Source of the DNA: Dimorphilus gyrociliatus
Taxonomy: Eukaryota > Animalia > Annelida
Direction of reading: 5' to 3'
DNA: 64,000 nt
Assembly (NCBI GenBank): GCA_904063045.1
Contig: CAJFCJ010000013.1
Span: 788,156 to 852,155 of the forward strand
Both the position numbers and the translations under genes were made by a program. How positions within the stretch are numbered: position 1 is the stretch's first letter; each line of letters begins with the position of its first letter. Positions 6,855 to 52,085 of this stretch are shown in pieces. The notes under the pieces were generated by a model, which was not told the DNA's origin, searched no databases, and saw nothing but the letters and a program-made list of their open reading frames with translations.

Positions 6855-9456
6855 TTAGAACGCCATAGAAGGTCCTGGATAATAGATTCCATCTAAAAAA
6901 GTATTATATAAGTTAATTTCTTTGTAGTAGGTTAAAAAATGGAAATATCTTACTATCAATATTGGAATTCTTCGGGAAAATGTTATCCTCCTTGTTGCGA
7001 GATATTCTTGGTGGTTTCATGTTTCTACCTTCTTGCTGGTCCATCTTCTTTATTCTAATTTGTCTCTCTTTTCTTCGTCTAACTTTTTCCTTTTCTTCTT
7101 CCTTCCTCCTCTTAGCTTTCTCCTTTTCCTCTGCCTTTCTCTTCGCAGCTTGTTCTTTATCCTTTGCCTTAATGATTCTCAATTCAATTTTTCTCTCTTC
7201 CGTTAGTTCTTCTTGCGGTTCTTTTTTGAATGGATTTTTTAATGATGTTACTCGATCCCAAAATCTACGGAAAACACCTCTTTTCTCTAACATATTTAAT
7301 CGTTTCTCCAAGAATACAATGCGTTCTTCCATATCCTCAGTTCTTTGTTCACTCTGAAGAAGCAAAATATGAACTTCAATCGCCCGCCTAAATAAGGCTA
7401 AAAACTGTTCGGGAGTTCGTCTATCAATTTCTCCATTCGGTAACCTATAAGGTTCATTTTGAACAACTTCTTGATCTGTATTTCCTTCAGGATTCATGAT
7501 AGTTTCATCGTCGCTGCCCTCTTGCCCATCGAGACAAAGAGAGTGAAACTTTCCGCCCTTTTTCAATCTCAAAATGCAGTCATCTTCAGAGTCTTCGCCA
7601 AAATCGATGTCTTCGTCAAATTTCGCTCGTCGCCTCTCAGACCTTTTCCTAAATAATTTCCTCCTAATCTTAATTTTCTTCTTTTTCTTATCAACATTGT
7701 CTGCTCCTTGAATATAGATGGTCTCATAACCTAAGGTTTGTATTCCCTCGAAATCTTTCATTTTTTCGGCAAACGAAGTATATCGTTTTTCTTTTTCGGC
7801 TTCTCTAATACTTTCCCGTAAACTTTCAATAATTTCTCTACGACGTTGCATTTCCTCTTCATCTAATTCAACTTCATCTTCAATATCAAATACTTCGTCG
7901 TTTGTATAACAGTAATCGTCGTCGTCACCGTCCTCATCGACAACTTCGTCATATTCGTAATCAGTTTTTTCTTGAAAGTTTACAAGGTCAACTTGTCCAT
8001 TTTCTACCTCAGTTTCTATTTCAGTTTCTTTTTCTGTCTCTAGCTCGGTCTCACCTTCGATCTCTCGTTCAGTCTCTGTTTCAATCTCTGTTTCAGTCTC
8101 TGTTTCAGTCTCCCTTGCCATCTCTTTTTCGGTTTCTACTTCGGGATCTTTCTCTGCTTCAACCTCAGTCTCTACTTCGGTATCTGTTTCAGCCTCTTTT
8201 TCAACAACCTTTTCAGCCTCTTTTTCAACAACCTTTTCAGCCTCTTTTTCAACAACCTTTTCAGCCTCTTTTTCAACAACCTTTTCAGTGTCCTTTTCAT
8301 CCTCCTCTTCGACGTCTATCTTTATCTCCATATCAATTTTTTCATATTCTTTACGGGGTGTATTTTTCTTTTTTTTAATAGTAAAACTATATGGGTCTGG
8401 AAAGTAATAAAGAAAGTGCGAGTAAAAAAAAAATGCTGTGTAAAAATTCTTACTGTAAAGTCCAAGATCCATATCGGGGACACAGGCCTCTCTGAACATT
8501 TCTTGCTCGTTATACAATTCATTACTTCGAGTTCGACTCCTAAAGCCTTCCTTAAAATCGAAACTGCTGCAAGGTTCGTCGTCATACTTTGGAAGAAAGT
8601 TTAATTCTTGACAAGCCTTATCTCTACACTTATCAGCTAAATCGAAACCGCCGCATGCTTGATCTTCATATTCTATTCCAAAATCCATAGTACCAAATAC
8701 TTCTCTTATTATCTCATTTCTAGATTTCTTTTTAATGGCAATACGAACACCACTAGATTCTAAATCCAATTCACCACAAGCTTGATCGTAACCCTTGTCT
8801 TCAAATCCACCACAAGCTTGATCGTAACCCTTATCTTCAAATCCACCGCAAGCTTGATCGTAACCTTCGCTAGCATCGAATCCACCACAAGCCTGGTCGA
8901 AACCTTTGTCTTCAAATCCACCACAAGCTCCTTGGGCTTCGCTTAGATCTAGAGAATGGAGAAAATCAATAGTCAATTTATTGTCGTAATTAATATCTTT
9001 AAAATTAAAAGACTTTCCTACCTAAATCGACAGCTCCTGTGCATCCTTTGCCGCTTGAACCATCAACGTAACACTCCGCAACGGTTTGCTGTTCAGGAGT
9101 AGTAATAGTTGACATATCTGGCTCAGTATCGTTATCGGTCTCTTCGTTCAGCGGTTCAAAATCTGATTTCAATGAGAAAACTAGTGAAAAAAGTTATTTA
9201 AGATTTCATTCTTGTACTTACCAGAGGATGGAAAAAGGCAGCTGAGAAGTGAAGATGCGAAATCGTCTGGTTCTTCAATAATACCATATTCTTCTTTGAA
9301 AAGTTCAATCAAATCGTTACCGTACAGCATATCTAAGTATTGTTTGGTCATGAATGATTCCTTCTTTAACATCTGTACATTATTTTTCATTTCCTTCACT
9401 TGTCTCTTAATTTCTCTCTTGTTCATAATTACAAAGTAGTTAGCTTTATTAACCAT
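6855..9456 (-). CDS. Uncharacterised acidic, low-complexity protein with Cys-containing tandem repeats and a basic coiled-coil C-terminus; 5 exons (9456-9222, 9180-9022, 8948-8454, 8396-6954, 6892-6855)
   Basis: The 91-aa and 687-aa ORFs join in frame through canonical introns of 41, 73, 57 and 61 nt with matching phases. The model ends NIDNGIYYPGPSMAF-stop. I recognise no domain. Confidence 0.8.
8188..8288. repeat. Coding 24-bp tandem repeat, 4 perfect copies plus a partial (EKEAEKVV on the - strand)
   Basis: Unit TTCAGCCTCTTTTTCAACAACCTT read directly in the sequence. Confidence 0.95.
8768..8945. repeat. Coding ~36-bp imperfect tandem repeat, about 5 copies (EDKGYDQACGGF on the - strand)
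   Basis: Recurrent TCAAATCCACCACAAGCTTGATCGTAACCCTT(G/A)TCT units. A detached copy (YEDQACGGFDL) lies at about 8640-8672. Confidence 0.92.
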
Positions 9457-35962: not shown

Positions 35963-35972
35963 GCGCATGCGC
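35963..35972. promoter_or_regulatory. NRF1-type palindrome GCGCATGCGC upstream of NAGS
   Basis: Exact consensus match in an otherwise AT-rich intergenic region. Confidence 0.45.
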
Positions 35973-41069: not shown

Positions 41070-44000
41070 ATGGAGGCGGAACAATTCACATCATCGCTTG
41101 TAGGACGTGAGGAGGATGATTCCAATTGGGATCGTGATGACAATACGATTCACAGTGGTCATTTTATGGTAAGTCGTGTTCACTCGGGCGAAGAAGAAGA
41201 AGGAGAAGAAGATGCCATCAGCCCGAAGAATACTGATCAAAGAGGTTATGACTTTACAAGTGCTGAACTGGATACAAGCAAAATTTATTTGTTTGGAAAT
41301 AGAAGCACAAATACTTTGACAGTAGAAAAGGAATTAACTACACTATTCGATTGTCTAACTATAGCATACAGGTTCTTATTAATACAAGGACAATTGATTT
41401 TAATTGTAATTAACAATTTCTTCTTTCGTTTTTATTAAAGTGCAAAATTAACTTCTCCTAAATGGAAACGTTTTAAAGGTGTAAAACTGCAATTAAAGGA
41501 CAAAATCCGCCTAAATAATATTATCTGGAGAGAATGGTATATGCAATATATACAGAATCGACATCCTGTTATTTGTCGATTTTCTGCTCCAATTGCTGAT
41601 GAGACGCATGCTAAACCAGAGGTAAGAAATGCAAGCTCATATTTCGTGTTTTTTTTATAAAAAAAAATCAATACATATTTAAAATATTAAAGGCTGTAGT
41701 TTTGGAGGGTAAATATTGGAAACGAAAGCTGGAGAATGTAACGGCGGAGTATAAGAAATGGCGCTCCTATTCTATGCATCAATTAAAGTTTAAAAATAAT
41801 GACCTTCTTGATATTTTTGCGGTATGTATCTAAAAAAGAAATGGCATTTCTATATCGTTTATATATAGTGTTCATATTACTTTTTTTATACGTCATTAAT
41901 GTTTTTCACTTTAGCATACCAGAAAGGATTCGCGAGACAGCGATTCATCTCTCCCGCTGTTCAATATAAACTCTAACCTTTCAACTATTATGAATGAGAT
42001 TATGTTTGATCAGCCGGAGGATATGGATTTCTCCGCCGATACTCTTTTCTCCAGTTTTTCTGTTCTTCCTTTTCCTAATCCGAAGGAAATATGTTAGTAA
42101 AAATAATAAATATAACATGATATTCTTATTATATATATTAAACAGTAGAGATATTGTTTTTTCTATTTTTGTAATTAATCTTATCTAATAATATCAATAT
42201 GTAAACAAAATATCTTTTTTTTACGTTAAGCCAACGCTCCAGTTCCCGCTGACGCTATTCAACCTGGCTTAGTTCAACTACAGCCTAACATTGATGAGTT
42301 AATGGAAATTGACGGTAACGGTACCGAAAAAATAAATTAAAATTGCTAATGACTTAATTATTTCAATCGCTTACATATTTCTTTTGTATTCAACCAGATA
42401 TATTCATAAATGGAAACGTTTCGATGTCGCAATCTCATTCAGTGGCTGAACCTGCAGCACCATCTGTGTCCTATACACCAACGTCTTTCTCATCTAGTCC
42501 GTCACTGTTTCGAGTTGCGGCTCCTGCCCAGCAGACTGCACAGAATACATCATTAAACGCTCTCCTGAACGCTTCGTGTATGTTAGGAAATTTTCCGTTA
42601 TTTATGTGATTAATTAAATGTTTATTTTTTATAGCAGCGAATAGTCAGCAGCAGTTGATACAAACCGTCCAGCCGATAGTAGTTTCCAGCGACTTATTAA
42701 ATCTAATAGTGCAGCAGTCTTCCGCTCCGGTACAATTGGTAACAAATACGACGCAATCTCAGCCTATCAAAATTGAAGAGACGCCCGTTTCGCCTCCTAT
42801 ACAACCATTTATCAATGATCAATTACGAACATTAGCTAAGAATAATACACCTAAACCACCGCCGGCGGTATCATCAACGTTGACGAGTAAGCCAACTGTG
42901 CAGCAACTCTTAGAGATGAAATCCAATCAGACGAAAATTTCTTCGCAAATTCAGGAAACGAGTCATCAATTACCAGCTACGACACCGAATAGCGAATTTA
43001 GAATTCCAAGAAATCCTCCGACAATAAGTAATAACACACATTTTCAAAACAACTTACAAAAGAAAAGGGTAGTTATTGTAGAGCCTCAACAGTCTAAGCA
43101 AAATCAATCGAAAAATAAGATACTCGCCAATCTATTGACTGGAACTCCAACACAATATCACTTGAACCACGAGCAGGTTAAGAAAGAAAAAAGCTATATA
43201 CCAATAAAACCAGCAACTAATGCAACTGTTTCATCATCTCAGTCGATAATAAATCAGATATCACCATCTTCGTCTGTTTTAATTAATCGGATATTCACTG
43301 AAAGGCAAACAGTCAACGATTTTCAACGTCAAGTTTTGATAAACGCGGCTGGAGATGCGTGTCAACCACCGGTTTTACAACCCCAATCTCCTATTACATC
43401 GACTACTGTTCAACAACCTACAAATTATACTAAGGCGCCTATGTCCCCTCCAACAAGTCAAGTTTGCGTAACTGTAGAAAGAGATTCTAATCGCAGAAAG
43501 TTAGGTCATAAGAATGCCGAACAAAAGAGAAGAGTTAACATCAAATACGGCTTTGATATGCTGCACGAGTTGGTTCCTTCTCTGAACTCTACTGCAGGTG
43601 GTTCGGGCAAAGTCTCTAAGGCTGTAACCTTGACAAAGGGAGCTGAATATGTACGAAAACTTAAAGCAGATAGGCAAAAATGTGACACTGAAATGGAATC
43701 TTTGAGAAAGCAAATCGAAGAGTTAAACAACGAAATCAGTAATTGCCAGGCACAATTACCCGCAACTGGCGTACCAGTAACCAGACAACGAGCGGACCAT
43801 ATGAAGAATATGCTCAACGATTACGTAAAGAAGAGAACTCTATCTAATTGGAAGTTTTGGATATTCTCCATTATCATAAAGCCACTTTTTGATACTTTCA
43901 GGGATATGGTTTCAACGGCCAGTGAAGCGGAAATGTGCCGTACAGTTTTGGCCTGGCTAGAGCAGCATTGTTCTCTTGTTCAACTTCGACCTGGTGTACT

Positions 44001-44100
44001 ATCTTCCCTAACAGAATTAAGCACAAAAACAGCTATTCTAACAGATCCTTCAAAAGTTCCAGAGCAGGCAACTTTAGCCGTTCAAGCGGTTAAGCATTGA
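41070..44100 (+). CDS. MLXIP: Mondo / MLX-interacting protein (bHLH-ZIP glucose-sensing transcription factor)
   Basis: Mondo conserved regions IHSGHFMVS, LTTLFDCL, KLTSPKWKRFKG...IRLNNIIWREWYMQY, LEGKYWKRK and QPGLVQLQPN; bHLH HKNAEQKRRVNIKYGF; C-terminal NWKFWIFS...WLEQHCSL..LRP. The start codon is uncertain (see findings). Confidence 0.95.
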
Positions 44101-44792: not shown

Positions 44793-44916
44793 CTTTTTTT
44801 TTAGTAATTTTTGAATCATTCACTACTTTTTCGATTTAAATGAAAAAATAATAAAACAATTGTTTTTGTGAAATATGCTTTTCTTTTGTTTCTTTATATG
44901 TCGTTTATATGATGGA

Positions 44917-44950
<34 letters not shown>
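44757..44950. repeat. Two (TA)n microsatellites (about 44757-44790 and 44917-44950)
   Basis: Direct inspection. Confidence 0.9.
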
Positions 44951-44956
<6 letters not shown>

Positions 44957-45629
44957 TATATAATTTATCTAAGCAGTGATGACAAGTATTTGGTAATATT
45001 ATTTGCAAATATATCAAGCTTTTTTTCTCGTTCTGTTACAATACTGCTTTTCTTTTCTGACAAAAAAAAGAAGATTTTTTCATTTTTGATCATCAATAAG
45101 GACAATCTATATAAAACGAAAAACTCTGAATATTTAACAATATGATTTAAACCAAAGGTTAAATTCATGCAATACATTGTATTGATTTTTAGAAACGAAA
45201 CAACTATTATGGGCGGCTTGGAAAGGGGAGGTAGTACAAAATATGCGATTTAGAAATAACTGGCACAATTCTTAAATGAATTGTATATGAAAGAAAAAAA
45301 AAGATTACAATGGAATTTCGATAAGATAATAGTCCTTCTCTTAATCAAAATGAATATTTTAATTATTGTACTATTATTCTTTTTTTTTGTTTTTGAAGTA
45401 CAGAACAGAAACTAGAACTTAATGTTTCGTTTTGTTTTTTTCATAAACAATTTTTTGCATATGATGAAAAAAATCACATATTTTTATAGATTGTAAACGA
45501 AATTAACATAATTAAGTGTAATAAATTTTGTAGTTATAATAGTTTATGCATTTGTTTCCTTTGTTATACAGTATATATGCAGTATATATACTTGAAGATG
45601 GAAAAAAAGAGAGAGATATTCATTTATTT

Positions 45630-47920
45630 TTAGGGAGGATTGGTAAAACTGAATAAAACTTGTTTTGTAATATATTCATGATTTTTCCAATAATTATCGC
45701 AGACAGTTTCAACAACTCCTGCTCTAGTATTTTCGTGGCGTGTGAATTTCACCTTTTTCTTCTTTAGGTAAGGAGTTTCTTGATATATAACCTCTTGCTT
45801 TCGACCCAAACTCCTTACTGCCTTTTGAATATCAAGAAAGTTCTTGCTAACCTCCGTTAAAGGACCTATCAATTTCATAGCACCCTCAAAGTCTCCGTTT
45901 AACCTGCATCGGTGTAAAGTTTCTAAAATATTCTTTACATTTGTATTAATAAACGGAGCCATTTTCTTTCTATCGCATTTTATGTACAAGTCTCCACTTG
46001 TCTTATCTGTGTCAAAGTCAAAAGGGCTATTTTCCAAGGACATAGCGTAGCTCAGAAAAAGAAATCTAGCCAAACAGTGGCTATAACACCAGGCCTTAGC
46101 TTTATCAATGTATAAAGTAAGGCCTTCAACTCCGTTTAACACGGCATTCATTAGCATAACCCATTGAATATCTTCGAGTTCGTAGTCTTCTCCAATATCA
46201 AAAATATCCATAATATCGTCGGCGGTTGTTAAAAATATTGATAAACATTGTCTCCGAAAAGTCTCCACAAGGACCGCCTTATCTCCGAATTTCCTCCTGA
46301 AAGAGTTGGGTGGTTCGTACCATTCATCGACTAACTCGCTTGGTAAATGAATTCTTCTATCTCCGCTGATAAAATAGAATTTTCCTCTTCTCTAGATCAA
46401 CAAATAAAATGTTAAAATACGAGTAAGAAAAGATAAAATCAATTCTATTACAAGACCTCTATAATTTCTCCAGCGGTCCATTCGCCCACAACACTTCTCA
46501 AGACCATATCGACCTTATGACAGTACAAACTTCCTATTTCGAATAAATCGTCCTCGTCCTCATCAAAACGAAACACAGCGCGAGACAATTCAATATGTCT
46601 ATAGGTAAGATCTATCACATTCTCGAAGAAAATCTTCTTCAATCCTTCGGCTTTTGGATCTACGTTATTTATTATTCACAGGCGATAGCTTTTAAATAAA
46701 AACGATTGTAAGACAAGTACTCACAAGCATCCTCTATGGTGTAATAGGGTATTCCTGGTCCATACCTGAGCAATCTAACGAATATAATTTCGGTTCCTTT
46801 TTCATTTAGATTAAGATTATAATCAATATTACAATTTGGTATCAAATTTGATAGATACCCAACTCTTTTTGTTAGAGAATCCATTCTAGTACCCCATCTA
46901 TCGCTGCGAATGCCAATAAAAGTTCTAAAAAGTCCCCTTGATCTCGTACGATCCCAATGCCTTTCGATAAATCCGGTTGAAAAGATAATCTTAGATTCGT
47001 AGGCCAATTTCCGAGCCTTTTGATGCTCGCTTGCGCTGCCTTTCTTAAAGTATTTCAGATATGCTTTAATCATATCTTTTGGGGCACTGGACATAAGGAG
47101 AATCCCCTCCAATTGGTGAACAATCTCATTCAGTATCTGAAAATATGAATCATAAAGGGGTCTAACAATTATTCTCTTTCCGGTTCTCGTCTGATATTCT
47201 ATAGGCCTACAGGGGACATCTTCTGTCTGACCAATATGAACATCGTAACAATTATCAATAGTTAGATGTTTCTCCATTCTAGTATTTAGGCTGGTTTTTC
47301 CTTTCGCTTCCAGGAATTCATTAACATCCATAATATCCTTTAGAGTACAATCGGGCGATATAATTTTCATATCTTCAGTTGTCCAGGAGAATAGGTCAAT
47401 ATATGCTCCCGTAAGATTTTTCCAAGCTGGATCTGATGCTAAAAGATCCGAAGGTGAAATATTCATGGTCATACTGTAAATATTCTCAAAGACGCTAAAA
47501 GCCAAATCGAAAGGCAAGTAGAAATTGGCTTGTTCAAAGTAATCGTAGGTACCGTAATTGCTCATAAAGGAAGATGCAAAATCGAGAAACTCTTCATATT
47601 CTTCATTGGAGACTATACCCCGATACGCAGCCGATCGAACATCGAACATTCTATTATTTTCAAGCATATGAATTATTCTCCAAAAGAGGAGAAAGGATGC
47701 ATTCGAACTCTAAATAGATTTTCGTAAAATTAATTAAAATATATTTGATTAAGTTTTTTCGAAGAGAAGTTAAACGAACCTGATACATGCTTATTAACGA
47801 TCCCATATCACAGATTTTCATCAATTTATAAACATACAATTGTTCACTTTCCGATAACTTTTCCATATCATCTTTGACGTCTAAACGACAAACAATCTTC
47901 TCTGATCCGCCGTATGCCAT
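45630..47920 (-). CDS. Divergent dipeptidyl peptidase 3 paralogue with both zinc motifs lost (predicted pseudo-peptidase); exons 47920-47780, 47709-46725, 46659-46457, 46391-45630; about 696 aa
   Basis: Colinear similarity to the neighbouring DPP3 (e.g. GFIE, GIP, WY...KF, I.DIF, LTLY, HCLAR). Two intron positions are shared with it. The joined length of 2091 nt is an open multiple of 3. Confidence 0.85.
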
Positions 47921-48030
47921 TCTATTTTCAATGAATATTACTTCTAATAAACCACTTACTATCAATGAAATTACAATATTAAATAACAGCTATTCTCTTT
48001 TTTGAAATTTTAACATTACGCCAATTTATC

Positions 48031-48041
48031 ACGCATGCGCA
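48031..48041. promoter_or_regulatory. NRF1-like motif ACGCATGCGCA about 110 nt upstream of the DPP3-paralogue start
   Basis: Motif match in the 440-nt gap between the two DPP3 copies. Confidence 0.35.
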
Positions 48042-48362
48042 AAGCGTCTACAAAGTATTCTCTTTTTAACTAGTACATTCATTCCATTTGTTCGATTTCC
48101 AAATAAATAGTTTCGTAGCACAATATAAATATCATTTTATTCATGCTTCAATTACAAACTATGCAAAAGTCAAACAGTTATTTGTTGCTATTAGAATATA
48201 AATTGATATGACCGACTTGTAAAGATTTTTCAGACTATCAGTAGTATTATTAATATAAGATAATTATACTTAGATATTTAAAAAAGAGGACTATTTTGTT
48301 TGTAACTTTTTCCTTGTTTTCAGCTTCAAAGTAATTTAAACGCTGACAGAAATTTAAATCAC

Positions 48363-50726
48363 TTAAGCGAAGAACTTATAGTTTTTTTTCATTTCCTGGT
48401 AGATAATATTATTGATATCACTGTCCGAGAATCGATCCTGCACGCTTTTGATTACTCCTGCGTAATTTTTCTCGTATGACTTCAACTCTACATCTCCTTG
48501 TTTGTCAATACTAGTGTGACATTGAAGCATCAGGTGTCTGGGCTTCTTTTTGGCAAGTACGATTTCTCTCCATTTGAGAAAATCGTATTTCATGCCTTCG
48601 ACTCTTGACAATCCTTCGTATAGCTTCCTTCCTTCTTCAACGTCACCAGTTGATCTATGAATTTGCAATTGAAGTAACAATTGTCCGATCGCCTCTTTGC
48701 CAATTTGCATCATAAGATCACGATTTAATGATAAATGGAGATCAAAAACCCCTTCATTTTCGCACATTTCAACTTTAACCAAATCTTCGCAATAATCCAT
48801 AAGATGCCTAAGAATGACGTATCTGGCTTGCATATGGGCTTGTCTCCACTTCCTGTTTGCTGGTGTATAGAATTCGAGTCCTCTAAGACCAGCATGTAAT
48901 TCGTTAAGCCAGTTAACATATATAATATTACCAGCTTCCTCTCCCTTAAATCCAAAAATTTCTAATATTTCAGGAATAAAGCACAAAAACATTCCAACAC
49001 ACTCAGCGCGGCACTCTTCGTACGAACTACTTATGTCTTGGAACTTTGAATCATATGATTCGTTTCCTTTATACCATTTATCAACCAATTTTCCTGTTAG
49101 AGGATTTATGGTCGAATCTCGATCGAAATTAAATTTTCCTACCGGATTCTAAAGGAAAGTAACAAGGTAAACATTTCAAATAGTTAAGTGCAAATAAATA
49201 TTTTATCGTTCTACCTCTTTAAACAGTAGACCGCTTCCATGACCCAACAATTCGTGCAGGCCAACTTGCAATTCGAATGCCGGAATTCGATACTTACAAA
49301 GGAGGGTGTTGTCTTCTGGCCCTAAGAAGGGAACGTTCGATTCAGAATATGCAGCGGTGAGAACATTTCCCAATGAAACATTTTTGAAGCCGTGCTCCTG
49401 TTTGACGTCTTCATAGTTTGGTATGTTGATGCCGGCGGGAATTCCACTTGAACCAAAAGCCAAAACGTCCAACGATGTAAAATCCGGAGTGACAAAATTT
49501 TCTCGTTCAAATGTGTTAGGCCAAGGTAGAAGTGGAACAAATTGCTTTTCAGCCGCCGCCACAAGGTTTTGAAATTTCTCAGATAGTGCTTTATTAACAA
49601 TAGCGGCAAAGCCTTCAAACTCTGCCCTCACGCCGAAAGGATCCCTATAAGATTCAATAAATCCAATATACGTTTCAATAATGGGACTTTTATTCAGTAC
49701 CCAAATTTTAGATCCTTCTTTATGCTCATCAATCGAACCAGTTTTAAAGGAATTAATATAATGACGAAGCATAACCTTTTCTCTTTCGTTTGCAAAATTC
49801 GTTTGTCGAGCTAATTCTAGAAAATTGCACGTTTTTTTAAGAATATCACAATAATCACCTTGGACAATTCGAATATTAATTTTCTGATTAGATTTTGTAG
49901 TAAATTCCATAAGTTCAGATTGACTTTCATTTACACTGGCAATGCGAATATCATAAGAGCCATCCTTATTTTTGACTACTCTTGTATTGTAAGGTGAAAT
50001 CTTTTTAGTTTCAAGAAATTCTTGTAAAATTTCTGCATCTTTCGCATCACAATTCTGCGAATAGTACGTCGTAATACCTTGATCGCCAAAACCAAGTTGT
50101 TGATTTTTATCTGTCAAACTACAAATATGATCTTTTACATTTGACCATATTTCATTGGTAATGGACGTTTCTTTTTCATATGCCTTCGATAGTTTAACAA
50201 TCTTCTCGAATTCAGAAAAGCCAATAGCCGGAATAATCTTTGTATCTCCAAATGACTTGTAATTTCCCATATTACAGAATATGCATGCTGTGTATGCCAA
50301 AAAATGCTCGTAGTCAATTTCTGACAAACCGCTATCAAGAACTTTTTGGGCCAGGCTGTTTACACTTTCAGTTTGAAATATTTTCAGCAGCAATAAAAAT
50401 ATACCTGGAGATTCTAATGACGTCTAAAAACAAAAAAGGAAGAAAAAAAAGAACAATTTTAGATGCCCTAATTTAAGGATGAGTAATCAAAATTTTTATC
50501 ATTTTTTTTTAGGAAGAATTAAATGATAAGGATTTATAGTTATATTTAAGTATTACATCAGTACCTGATAAAGACATACTAAACTACCATAATGGCCAGC
50601 TTGAGCCAAATAGTGGGCATACAATTTTTCCTCCTTCGTCAATTTTCCAAAGGCTTCAGAGCAGTCAAGAATAGCCACAGGGGTTTTCATGGTTGCAGTG
50701 AACAGATCTCTCTTTAATTCGGTCAT
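48363..50726 (-). CDS. DPP3: Dipeptidyl peptidase 3 (M49 zinc peptidase); exons 50726-50565, 50423-49215, 49148-48363
   Basis: Intact HELLGH and EECRAE motifs, plus GFIESYRDP, GIPAGINIPNY, GFKNVSLGN and QAHMQAR. Confidence 0.97.
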
Positions 50727-51436: not shown

Positions 51437-52085
51437 TTATATTCCTTCAAATTCTGTGAATACTTTTGGATGTAGGTCTTTGAATCCTATGATTATTCTA
51501 CCGTCCTTGTCCAATTTAACTGGATATGTCTCGATGGATCTTCCCACGTGGTTAGGAGAAACAACTTTTCCATCAAGTAAATTAATTCTCCAGTTGTGCC
51601 AAGGGCATTTTACACAAGGCACTCTATTTCTCCCCACCATGAAATCCTCAATGTCACCTTGTTCTAAAGGTCCGCCTTTAAGTAGACATGGGGTCGTATT
51701 AGTTATTCAATGCTTTGTCATTACGTAAATAATTAACTTACTCTGATGAGGACACAGGCGGTCTATTGCGAAGATACGCATGCCATACCTGAATAGTGCA
51801 ATTTTTGAATAGTTACACACAACGGAGGCATTTCTTCCCAAGCAAAGGATATGATTTTCACTTCGGTTCCGTCGCCAGTCGCTCAATCTTGCTTCATAGT
51901 CATGTTTATGTGAACATGGCTTAGCCTTCCAGTCGTGCAACTCTGAAAAATAAAACTGCACAATTAAAAACAGGTATAATTACACGTTTTTATCTATAGT
52001 GGGTCAAAATTTAACCGTAAAAAAATTTTTCCGTGGGAAGATAGAAAGTATCCCCGTCAAACAGCATCTCAATGTATTTCTCCAT
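51437..52085 (-). CDS. RFESD: Rieske [2Fe-2S] domain-containing protein; 3 exons
   Basis: IFAIDRLCPHQ|SGPLEQGDIEDF...PCVKCPWHNWRINLLDGK supplies the CxH and CxxH Rieske ligands. The first exon (ATG 52085) is inferred from phase. Confidence 0.85.

Follow-up and report, generated by a model that had tools for sequence, protein, structure and literature searches.

A predicted M49 pseudo-peptidase encoded beside the active DPP3 gene of the annelid Dimorphilus gyrociliatus and probably maintained by purifying selection

Introduction

Dead peptidase paralogues are already a well-known kind of protein. DPP6 and DPP10 are inactive dipeptidyl-peptidase-like membrane proteins of family S9B whose partners are Kv4 channels. 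Non-catalytic roles are also of general interest for dipeptidyl peptidase III (DPP3, or DPP III; family M49), because the human enzyme binds KEAP1. The canonical M49 enzyme, with solved structures from human (3FVY, 5E33) and yeast (3CSK), has zinc ligands H450, H455, and E508 and a catalytic residue E451 in human numbering, within the motifs HELLGH and EECRAE. A homologue without HEXXXH, An01g02980 of Aspergillus niger, has been judged unlikely to be proteolytic (PMC7804941), in a report that gives no evidence of selection, orthologues, or function for it. Here we describe a tandem pair of M49 genes in a stretch of 64,000 nucleotides (nt) from the annelid Dimorphilus gyrociliatus (contig CAJFCJ010000013.1, positions 788,156 to 852,155, forward strand; hereafter the window), in which a canonical DPP3 gene, copy A, is followed by copy B, a full-length gene stripped of the catalytic motifs. 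The evidence from orthologues in a second species, from another dead paralogue, and from a decayed relic makes it very probable that B is an M49 pseudo-peptidase kept by purifying selection and no decaying duplicate.

Results

Loss of the catalytic motifs in an intact M49 gene

Copies A and B lie head to tail on the minus strand of the window, which has a G+C content of ~33% and introns of 65-140 nt, and the start of B is located 443 nt past the stop of A. A sequence-only reading of this DNA had described B as a full-length frame of about 696 amino acids in four exons without stop or frameshift, and every coordinate proved exact: there are 2088 coding bases, or 696 codons, in open frames separated by three GT-AG introns of 70, 65, and 65 nt (Table 1). 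That reading had also held that B and DPP3 have two intron positions in common. Both introns of A do recur in B at the same codon boundary and in the same phase, one after ...LYQ / ...MYQ and the other 14 residues past the first residue of the HELLGH-equivalent. Each analysis reported here, from family scans and searches to alignments, substitution counts, trees, and folds, was run exon by exon. A profile check proposed earlier placed B above the Peptidase_M49 (PF03571) cut-off of 21 bits on two exons, with 48.3 bits for exon 2 and 94.2 bits for exon 4 (47.8 and 112.1 bits in a genome-wide Pfam search). These scores are a fifth of those of A (415 and 259 bits by exon), and the two copies share 20-25% amino-acid identity.

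In the alignment of B to A, which is ungapped and anchored by a shared intron at the HELLGH position, the four motif replacements that had been proposed were recovered exactly, namely RSVVGE for HELLGH, ETFRRQ for EECRAE, GFIERH for GFIESY, and YSHCLAR for QAHMQAR, the last with its His kept. Neither the HEXXGH nor the EEXR(K)AE(D) signature of active M49 peptidases is present in B. Among the residues that anchor the substrate in the human enzyme (E316, Y318, N391, N394, H568, K666, and R669), B retains counterparts of E316 and H568 alone, and the rest are replaced or deleted.

Conservation in a second species

When exon 2 of B was searched exhaustively with HMMER against 1.84 billion cluster representatives, only two close clusters were returned (P0001, 67% identity; P0002, 31%). 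The other matches were weak (expectation value, E, above 1e-7), and every full-length one among them carried HExxGH and EEC[RK]A[ED], the remainder being short fragments. A word-based protein search with the same exon returned only one orthologue cluster and is little informative, as its length window excludes full-length proteins. Both close clusters stem from unannotated read assemblies of one other species, and the contigs in question hold complete orthologues of B (B', contig L007) and of a further paralogue, copy C (C', contig L009). The orthologue of A was found likewise in the second species (A', cluster P0020, contig L010). All four exons and all splice sites of B are present in B', which has no stop, and the exon ends of A, B, and C are flanked by AG and GT in both species. 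At the HELLGH position the sequences read RSVVGE in B, KNVVGE in B', KTIIGG in C, and KAIIGG in C', and at the EECRAE position ETFRRQ, EMFRRE, EVLRRE, and ESLRRE, respectively. For short, we refer to these four genes as the dead copies.

The proportions of nonsynonymous (pN) and synonymous (pS) differences, taken from Nei-Gojobori counts summed over exons, are 0.139 and 0.776 for A and A' (77.9% amino-acid identity), 0.184 and 0.753 for B and B' (69.5%), and 0.152 and 0.580 for C and C' (71.5%). The species split is old enough to saturate silent sites: synonymous sites are saturated for the A and B pairs, and introns are 46-63% identical between the species, approximately the chance level. Amino-acid change in the dead copies has been only 1.1 to 1.4 times as fast as in the enzyme. 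The sequence-only reading had named a ratio of nonsynonymous to synonymous rates (dN/dS) near 1 as a result that would speak against selection, and the value found against the orthologue is a pN/pS of about 0.24, as an upper bound. Because the frame of B is intact and pN lies far below a saturated pS in two species, B appears to be under selection. In its combination of homology to an active enzyme, lost catalytic residues, and an intact frame under purifying selection across species, B has the attributes of a pseudoenzyme.

A second dead paralogue

A Pfam search of the whole assembly (77.9 Mb, 349 contigs) found exactly three M49 loci, namely A, B, and copy C on another contig (C19). Copy C is a predicted gene of 707 codons with the same four-exon plan as B, which includes the additional phase-1 intron, placed at an identical Tyr codon. 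In B and C alike, exon 3 measures exactly 203 nt, and its ends match in both orthologues. Like B, C is a dead M49 paralogue that has undergone the same type of motif loss and has a conserved counterpart in the second species; unlike B, which is acidic (net charge -11), it is basic (+12), has no DPP3 gene adjoining it, and carries Glu at the H568 equivalent. The two dead paralogues are only 25-36% identical to each other. Since C shares both the extra intron and the motif loss of B, a single loss of the catalytic residues probably preceded the old duplication that gave rise to B and C. The four dead copies group as one clade with 100/100 support in trees built from two independent regions, and the very long stem and short tips of this clade look like what rapid early change and later constraint would leave.

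Two further features of the C genes were observed. The first intron of C has a GC donor (GCAAGC / GCAAGT), which is conserved in both species (L006:2471-2472 and L009:6629-6630), and C' (L009:8106-8999) has a 35-residue, very acidic Asp/Glu/Asn-rich insertion near its C-terminus that is absent from copy C of D. gyrociliatus.

A decayed relic beside the enzyme of the second species

In the second species, B' does not lie beside A' and is instead located between RFC1 and the next gene, in a stretch otherwise collinear with a contig (C9) of the present genome on which the flanking genes are ~440 nt apart. No M49 trace was found at this RFC1 locus of D. gyrociliatus, which favors relocation in the other species over reciprocal loss. 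A' retains its rabphilin neighbor, and ~0.8-1.0 kb downstream of it a B-type exon 4 survives as a frameshifted remnant (L010:7687-7785 and 7784-7909), which includes the B-specific WxxSHC segment. Only ~75 residues of this relic are recognizable, with 36-40% identity to B and a score of 40 bits versus at most 22.7 in 200 shuffles. Given this B-type relic downstream of A', the simplest history would be that the tandem A-B pair is ancestral: the common ancestor would have held the pair, and in the other lineage a B copy would have moved to the RFC1 locus, after which the original beside A' decayed. The relic serves as a neutral yardstick, as it shows how far an unselected copy has eroded over this time span. 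The loss of A-B adjacency in the other species also implies that the function of B is independent of its lying beside A.

The former active site

Alignments to solved DPP3 structures provide human numbering for the positions compared in Table 2. Of the columns invariant in 17 canonical DPP3 sequences, B keeps 19/58, 4/14, and 5/9 in three regions. Several segments are replaced in the same manner in all four dead copies, which have FFENVI where canonical enzymes have SLGNVL, TAGEI for GSGLLF, FRR[EQ]CL for CRAECV, and RTF or RTY for EGF, as well as Arg or Lys at the positions of H450, E329, and A511. As these replaced segments are fixed across all four, the cleft looks remodelled for a different partner, and the pattern suggests that it was first rebuilt and has since been conserved, and that it is neither a relaxed ruin nor a preserved peptide trap. 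It is unlikely that B would bind peptides in the manner of DPP3, because the equivalents of Y318, E327, E329, N391, N394, K666, and R669 are lost.

Table 2. Residues of the dead copies at positions of the human DPP3 active site
Human position	B/B'	C/C'
E316	E/E	D/D
Y318	H/Q	L/L
E327	L/L	S/T
E329	R/R	R/R
N391, N394 strand	shortened and replaced	shortened and replaced
H450	R/K	K/K
E451	S/N	T/A
H455	E/E	G/G
E507, R510	kept	kept
E508	T/M	V/S
H568	H/H	E/E
K666, R669	lost	lost

No HExxH or HExxxH was found anywhere in B, C, or C'. A possible alternative zinc motif, HEYLTH near the C-terminus, occurs in B' only; B has HEYITK at this place, and the motif was discarded as not conserved. Net charge was likewise rejected as a clue to the ligand, since B is acidic like A while C is basic, and the copies show no common trend. 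AlphaFold models of two pieces of B matched only DPP III structures, with a predicted local distance difference test (pLDDT) score of 79.9, E 9e-10, and a template modeling (TM) score of 0.66 for the exon-4 piece and a pLDDT of 74.7, E 3e-13, and TM 0.43 for the exon-2 piece. As far as these two modeled pieces show, the DPP III fold is predicted to be retained in B.

The DPP3 locus and its surroundings

Copy A is a canonical DPP3 with both catalytic motifs intact. It is ~50% identical to mollusc, fish, and insect DPP3, and among named DPP3s its nearest matches come from spiralians and other bilaterians, every one at ~50% identity. It matches human DPP3 structures with E 4e-122. Between A and B lies an AATAAA, a candidate poly(A) signal of A by pattern match only. 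The NRF1-like motif that the sequence-only reading had noticed upstream of B, GCGCATGCG, was located as described. This motif has two sites in the window versus 0.07 hits expected by chance, the scan total of three hits arising because the palindromic site is counted on both strands. As a conserved promoter element of B it was rejected, since it is absent from the loci of the other species, where B' moreover lies at a different locus.

Several neighboring features were recorded in passing. Directly upstream of A, between DPP3 and a rabphilin-like FYVE/C2 gene, short open frames resemble a small Rieske-type iron-sulphur protein (CPH...CPWH pattern). On the opposite side, a large exon encodes the C-terminal basic helix-loop-helix (bHLH)-zipper part of a Mondo/MLX-interacting-protein-like factor and converges on the 3' end of B, and a TA-rich microsatellite (translated YIYIYIY) lies in the AT-rich spacer between these two genes.

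Table 1. Features of the window, with positions counted from its first nucleotide
Feature	Position	Strand	Remarks
Copy B, predicted M49 pseudo-peptidase gene	45630..47920	-	exons 47920-47780, 47709-46725, 46659-46457, 46391-45633; stop 45632-45630
RSVVGE replacing HELLGH	46481..46498	-	zinc-binding and catalytic motif; alignment anchored by the shared intron 14 residues downstream
ETFRRQ replacing EECRAE	46248..46265	-	third zinc ligand (human E508 equivalent) is Thr; Met in the orthologue
GFIERH replacing GFIESY	46957..46974	-	human E316 equivalent kept; Y318 to His
YSHCLAR replacing QAHMQAR	46065..46085	-	His of B and B' corresponds to human H568; copy C has Glu
Extra phase-1 intron of B	46660..46724	-	absent from A; common to copy C and both orthologues
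GCGCATGCG (NRF1-like) motif	48032..48040	-	112 nt upstream of the ATG of B
Copy A, canonical DPP3 gene	48363..50726	-	exons 50726-50565, 50423-49215, 49148-48366; stop 48365-48363; 718 amino acids
HELLGH, intact in copy A	49239..49256	-	
EECRAE, intact in copy A	49002..49019	-	
AATAAA, candidate poly(A) signal of copy A	48136..48141	-	between the stop of A and the NRF1-like motif of B
Sole other GCGCATGCG site	35963..35972		palindromic, matches both strands
Mondo/MLX-interacting-protein-like exon	42655..44100	+	
TA-rich microsatellite	44900..44960		
Rieske-like open frames	51437..51961	-	
Rabphilin-like FYVE/C2 gene	53452 onward		

Discussion

The sequence-only reading had proposed that B is a stripped, intact copy under selection for a non-catalytic role, and this proposal is supported by the B' orthologue, by pN of 0.18 versus pS of 0.75, by the dead paralogue C, and by the decayed relic. 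For the history of the family, a plausible sequence begins in an ancestor of the present lineage, with DPP3 duplicated in tandem. The three zinc ligands and the catalytic Glu would then have disappeared in a burst of change, and the dead gene would have been duplicated again to produce B and C, both of which would since have evolved almost as slowly as the enzyme. In this scheme, B would be a zinc-free, two-lobed protein of the M49 fold that acts by binding or scaffolding and not by hydrolysis, with a ligand that differs from DPP3 substrates. We infer both the order of these duplication and loss events and the binding role of B. With respect to the origin of B and C, the tandem position and the relic are better evidence than the trees.

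We regard it as extremely unlikely that B is a young pseudogene, or one in slow decay, with a frame that has stayed open by chance. The strong divergence of B from A, in both identity and Pfam score, is what lends this explanation some appeal, but the 696-codon frame and its three introns have been kept in two species with saturated synonymous sites, where pN is a quarter of pS, and the gene was already dead when it duplicated into B and C. The copy in the other species that is truly unselected has been reduced to a frameshifted 75-residue trace, and erosion to this extent rules out that B is a young pseudogene. It is also very unlikely that the four-exon model is wrong and that the locus yields a shorter or differently spliced product or a non-coding transcript. 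The orthologue and paralogue C agree with B in exon ends, phases, and AG/GT flanks, the fixed length of exon 3 in B and C and its matching ends in both orthologues would be difficult to reconcile with such an error, and the spliced length fits DPP3 end to end, with an alignment that is continuous across every junction; against this stand two weak donor sites, GTTCGT and GTCTTG.

A further explanation is that B is still an enzyme, either a peptidase that uses other ligands, such as Glu at position 455 together with E507 and H568, or a protein with a different chemistry on the M49 scaffold. A fungal member of the DPP III family is reportedly an aflatoxin oxidase, and E507 and R510 are kept in all copies, as are H568 and R572 in B and B'. 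However, the dead copies have Ser, Asn, Thr, or Ala in place of the general base E451, the candidate ligands differ between B and C (Glu versus Gly at position 455 and His versus Glu at position 568), the substrate anchors N391, N394, Y318, K666, and R669 are lost, and B contains no zincin motif. Taken together, these data leave retained enzymatic activity of B quite unlikely.

Several points nevertheless weigh against B being a selectively maintained pseudo-peptidase. The comparison covers a single other species, and with dS saturated the pN/pS of about 0.24 gives only an upper bound on dN/dS. We infer the absence of peptidase activity in B from sequence alone, and E507 and H568 still have their equivalents in B and B', which also carry Glu at the H455 position, so that an unorthodox metal site is formally possible. 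The placement of the dead clade relative to A is weak as well: support for joining this clade with A in the best C-terminal tree is 18/48, and in the N-terminal tree the clade is drawn to the outgroups by long-branch attraction.

A more ambitious proposal, and one that we consider doubtful, is that B and C are the first members of a functional M49 pseudo-peptidase class in which a remodelled cleft binds a specific ligand or protein without cleavage. Such proteins could, for example, act as a sensor or buffer for neuropeptide-like peptides or as a regulatory partner of the active DPP3, with the role arising in a lineage of miniaturised annelids where paralogues are otherwise pruned. RNA sequencing (RNA-seq), cap analysis of gene expression (CAGE), and assay for transposase-accessible chromatin (ATAC) data have been published for D. 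gyrociliatus (PMC7854359) and are suited to direct tests of the expression of B.

Canonical DPP3 is homologous to B over its whole length, has the same fold in the two modeled pieces, and shares with it the E507 and R510 equivalents and the GFI[ED] segment. In contrast to the canonical enzyme, B has its zinc ligands H450, H455, and E508 and the catalytic E451 replaced, has lost most substrate contacts, and keeps about one third of the positions invariant in the 17 canonical sequences. The statement of the sequence-only reading that no M49 pseudo-enzyme of this kind had been described stands in part. Full-text literature searches turned up no paper in which DPP III or M49 occurs together with "pseudoenzyme", and we found no M49 pseudoenzyme with evidence of selection in the literature, but the motif-less A. 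niger homologue is on record (PMC7804941). An01g02980 is, like B, an M49 member without the zinc motif; unlike B, it is fungal and a passing entry in a degradome list. DPP6 and DPP10 are likewise dead dipeptidyl peptidase paralogues, and are kept for a non-catalytic binding role; they differ from B in having an unrelated fold and catalytic class, in being membrane proteins, and in having known partners. Pseudoenzymes are common, and what the present locus adds is a genome in which the active enzyme is accompanied by two dead DPP3 paralogues, both conserved across an old species split, together with a relic that provides a neutral yardstick.

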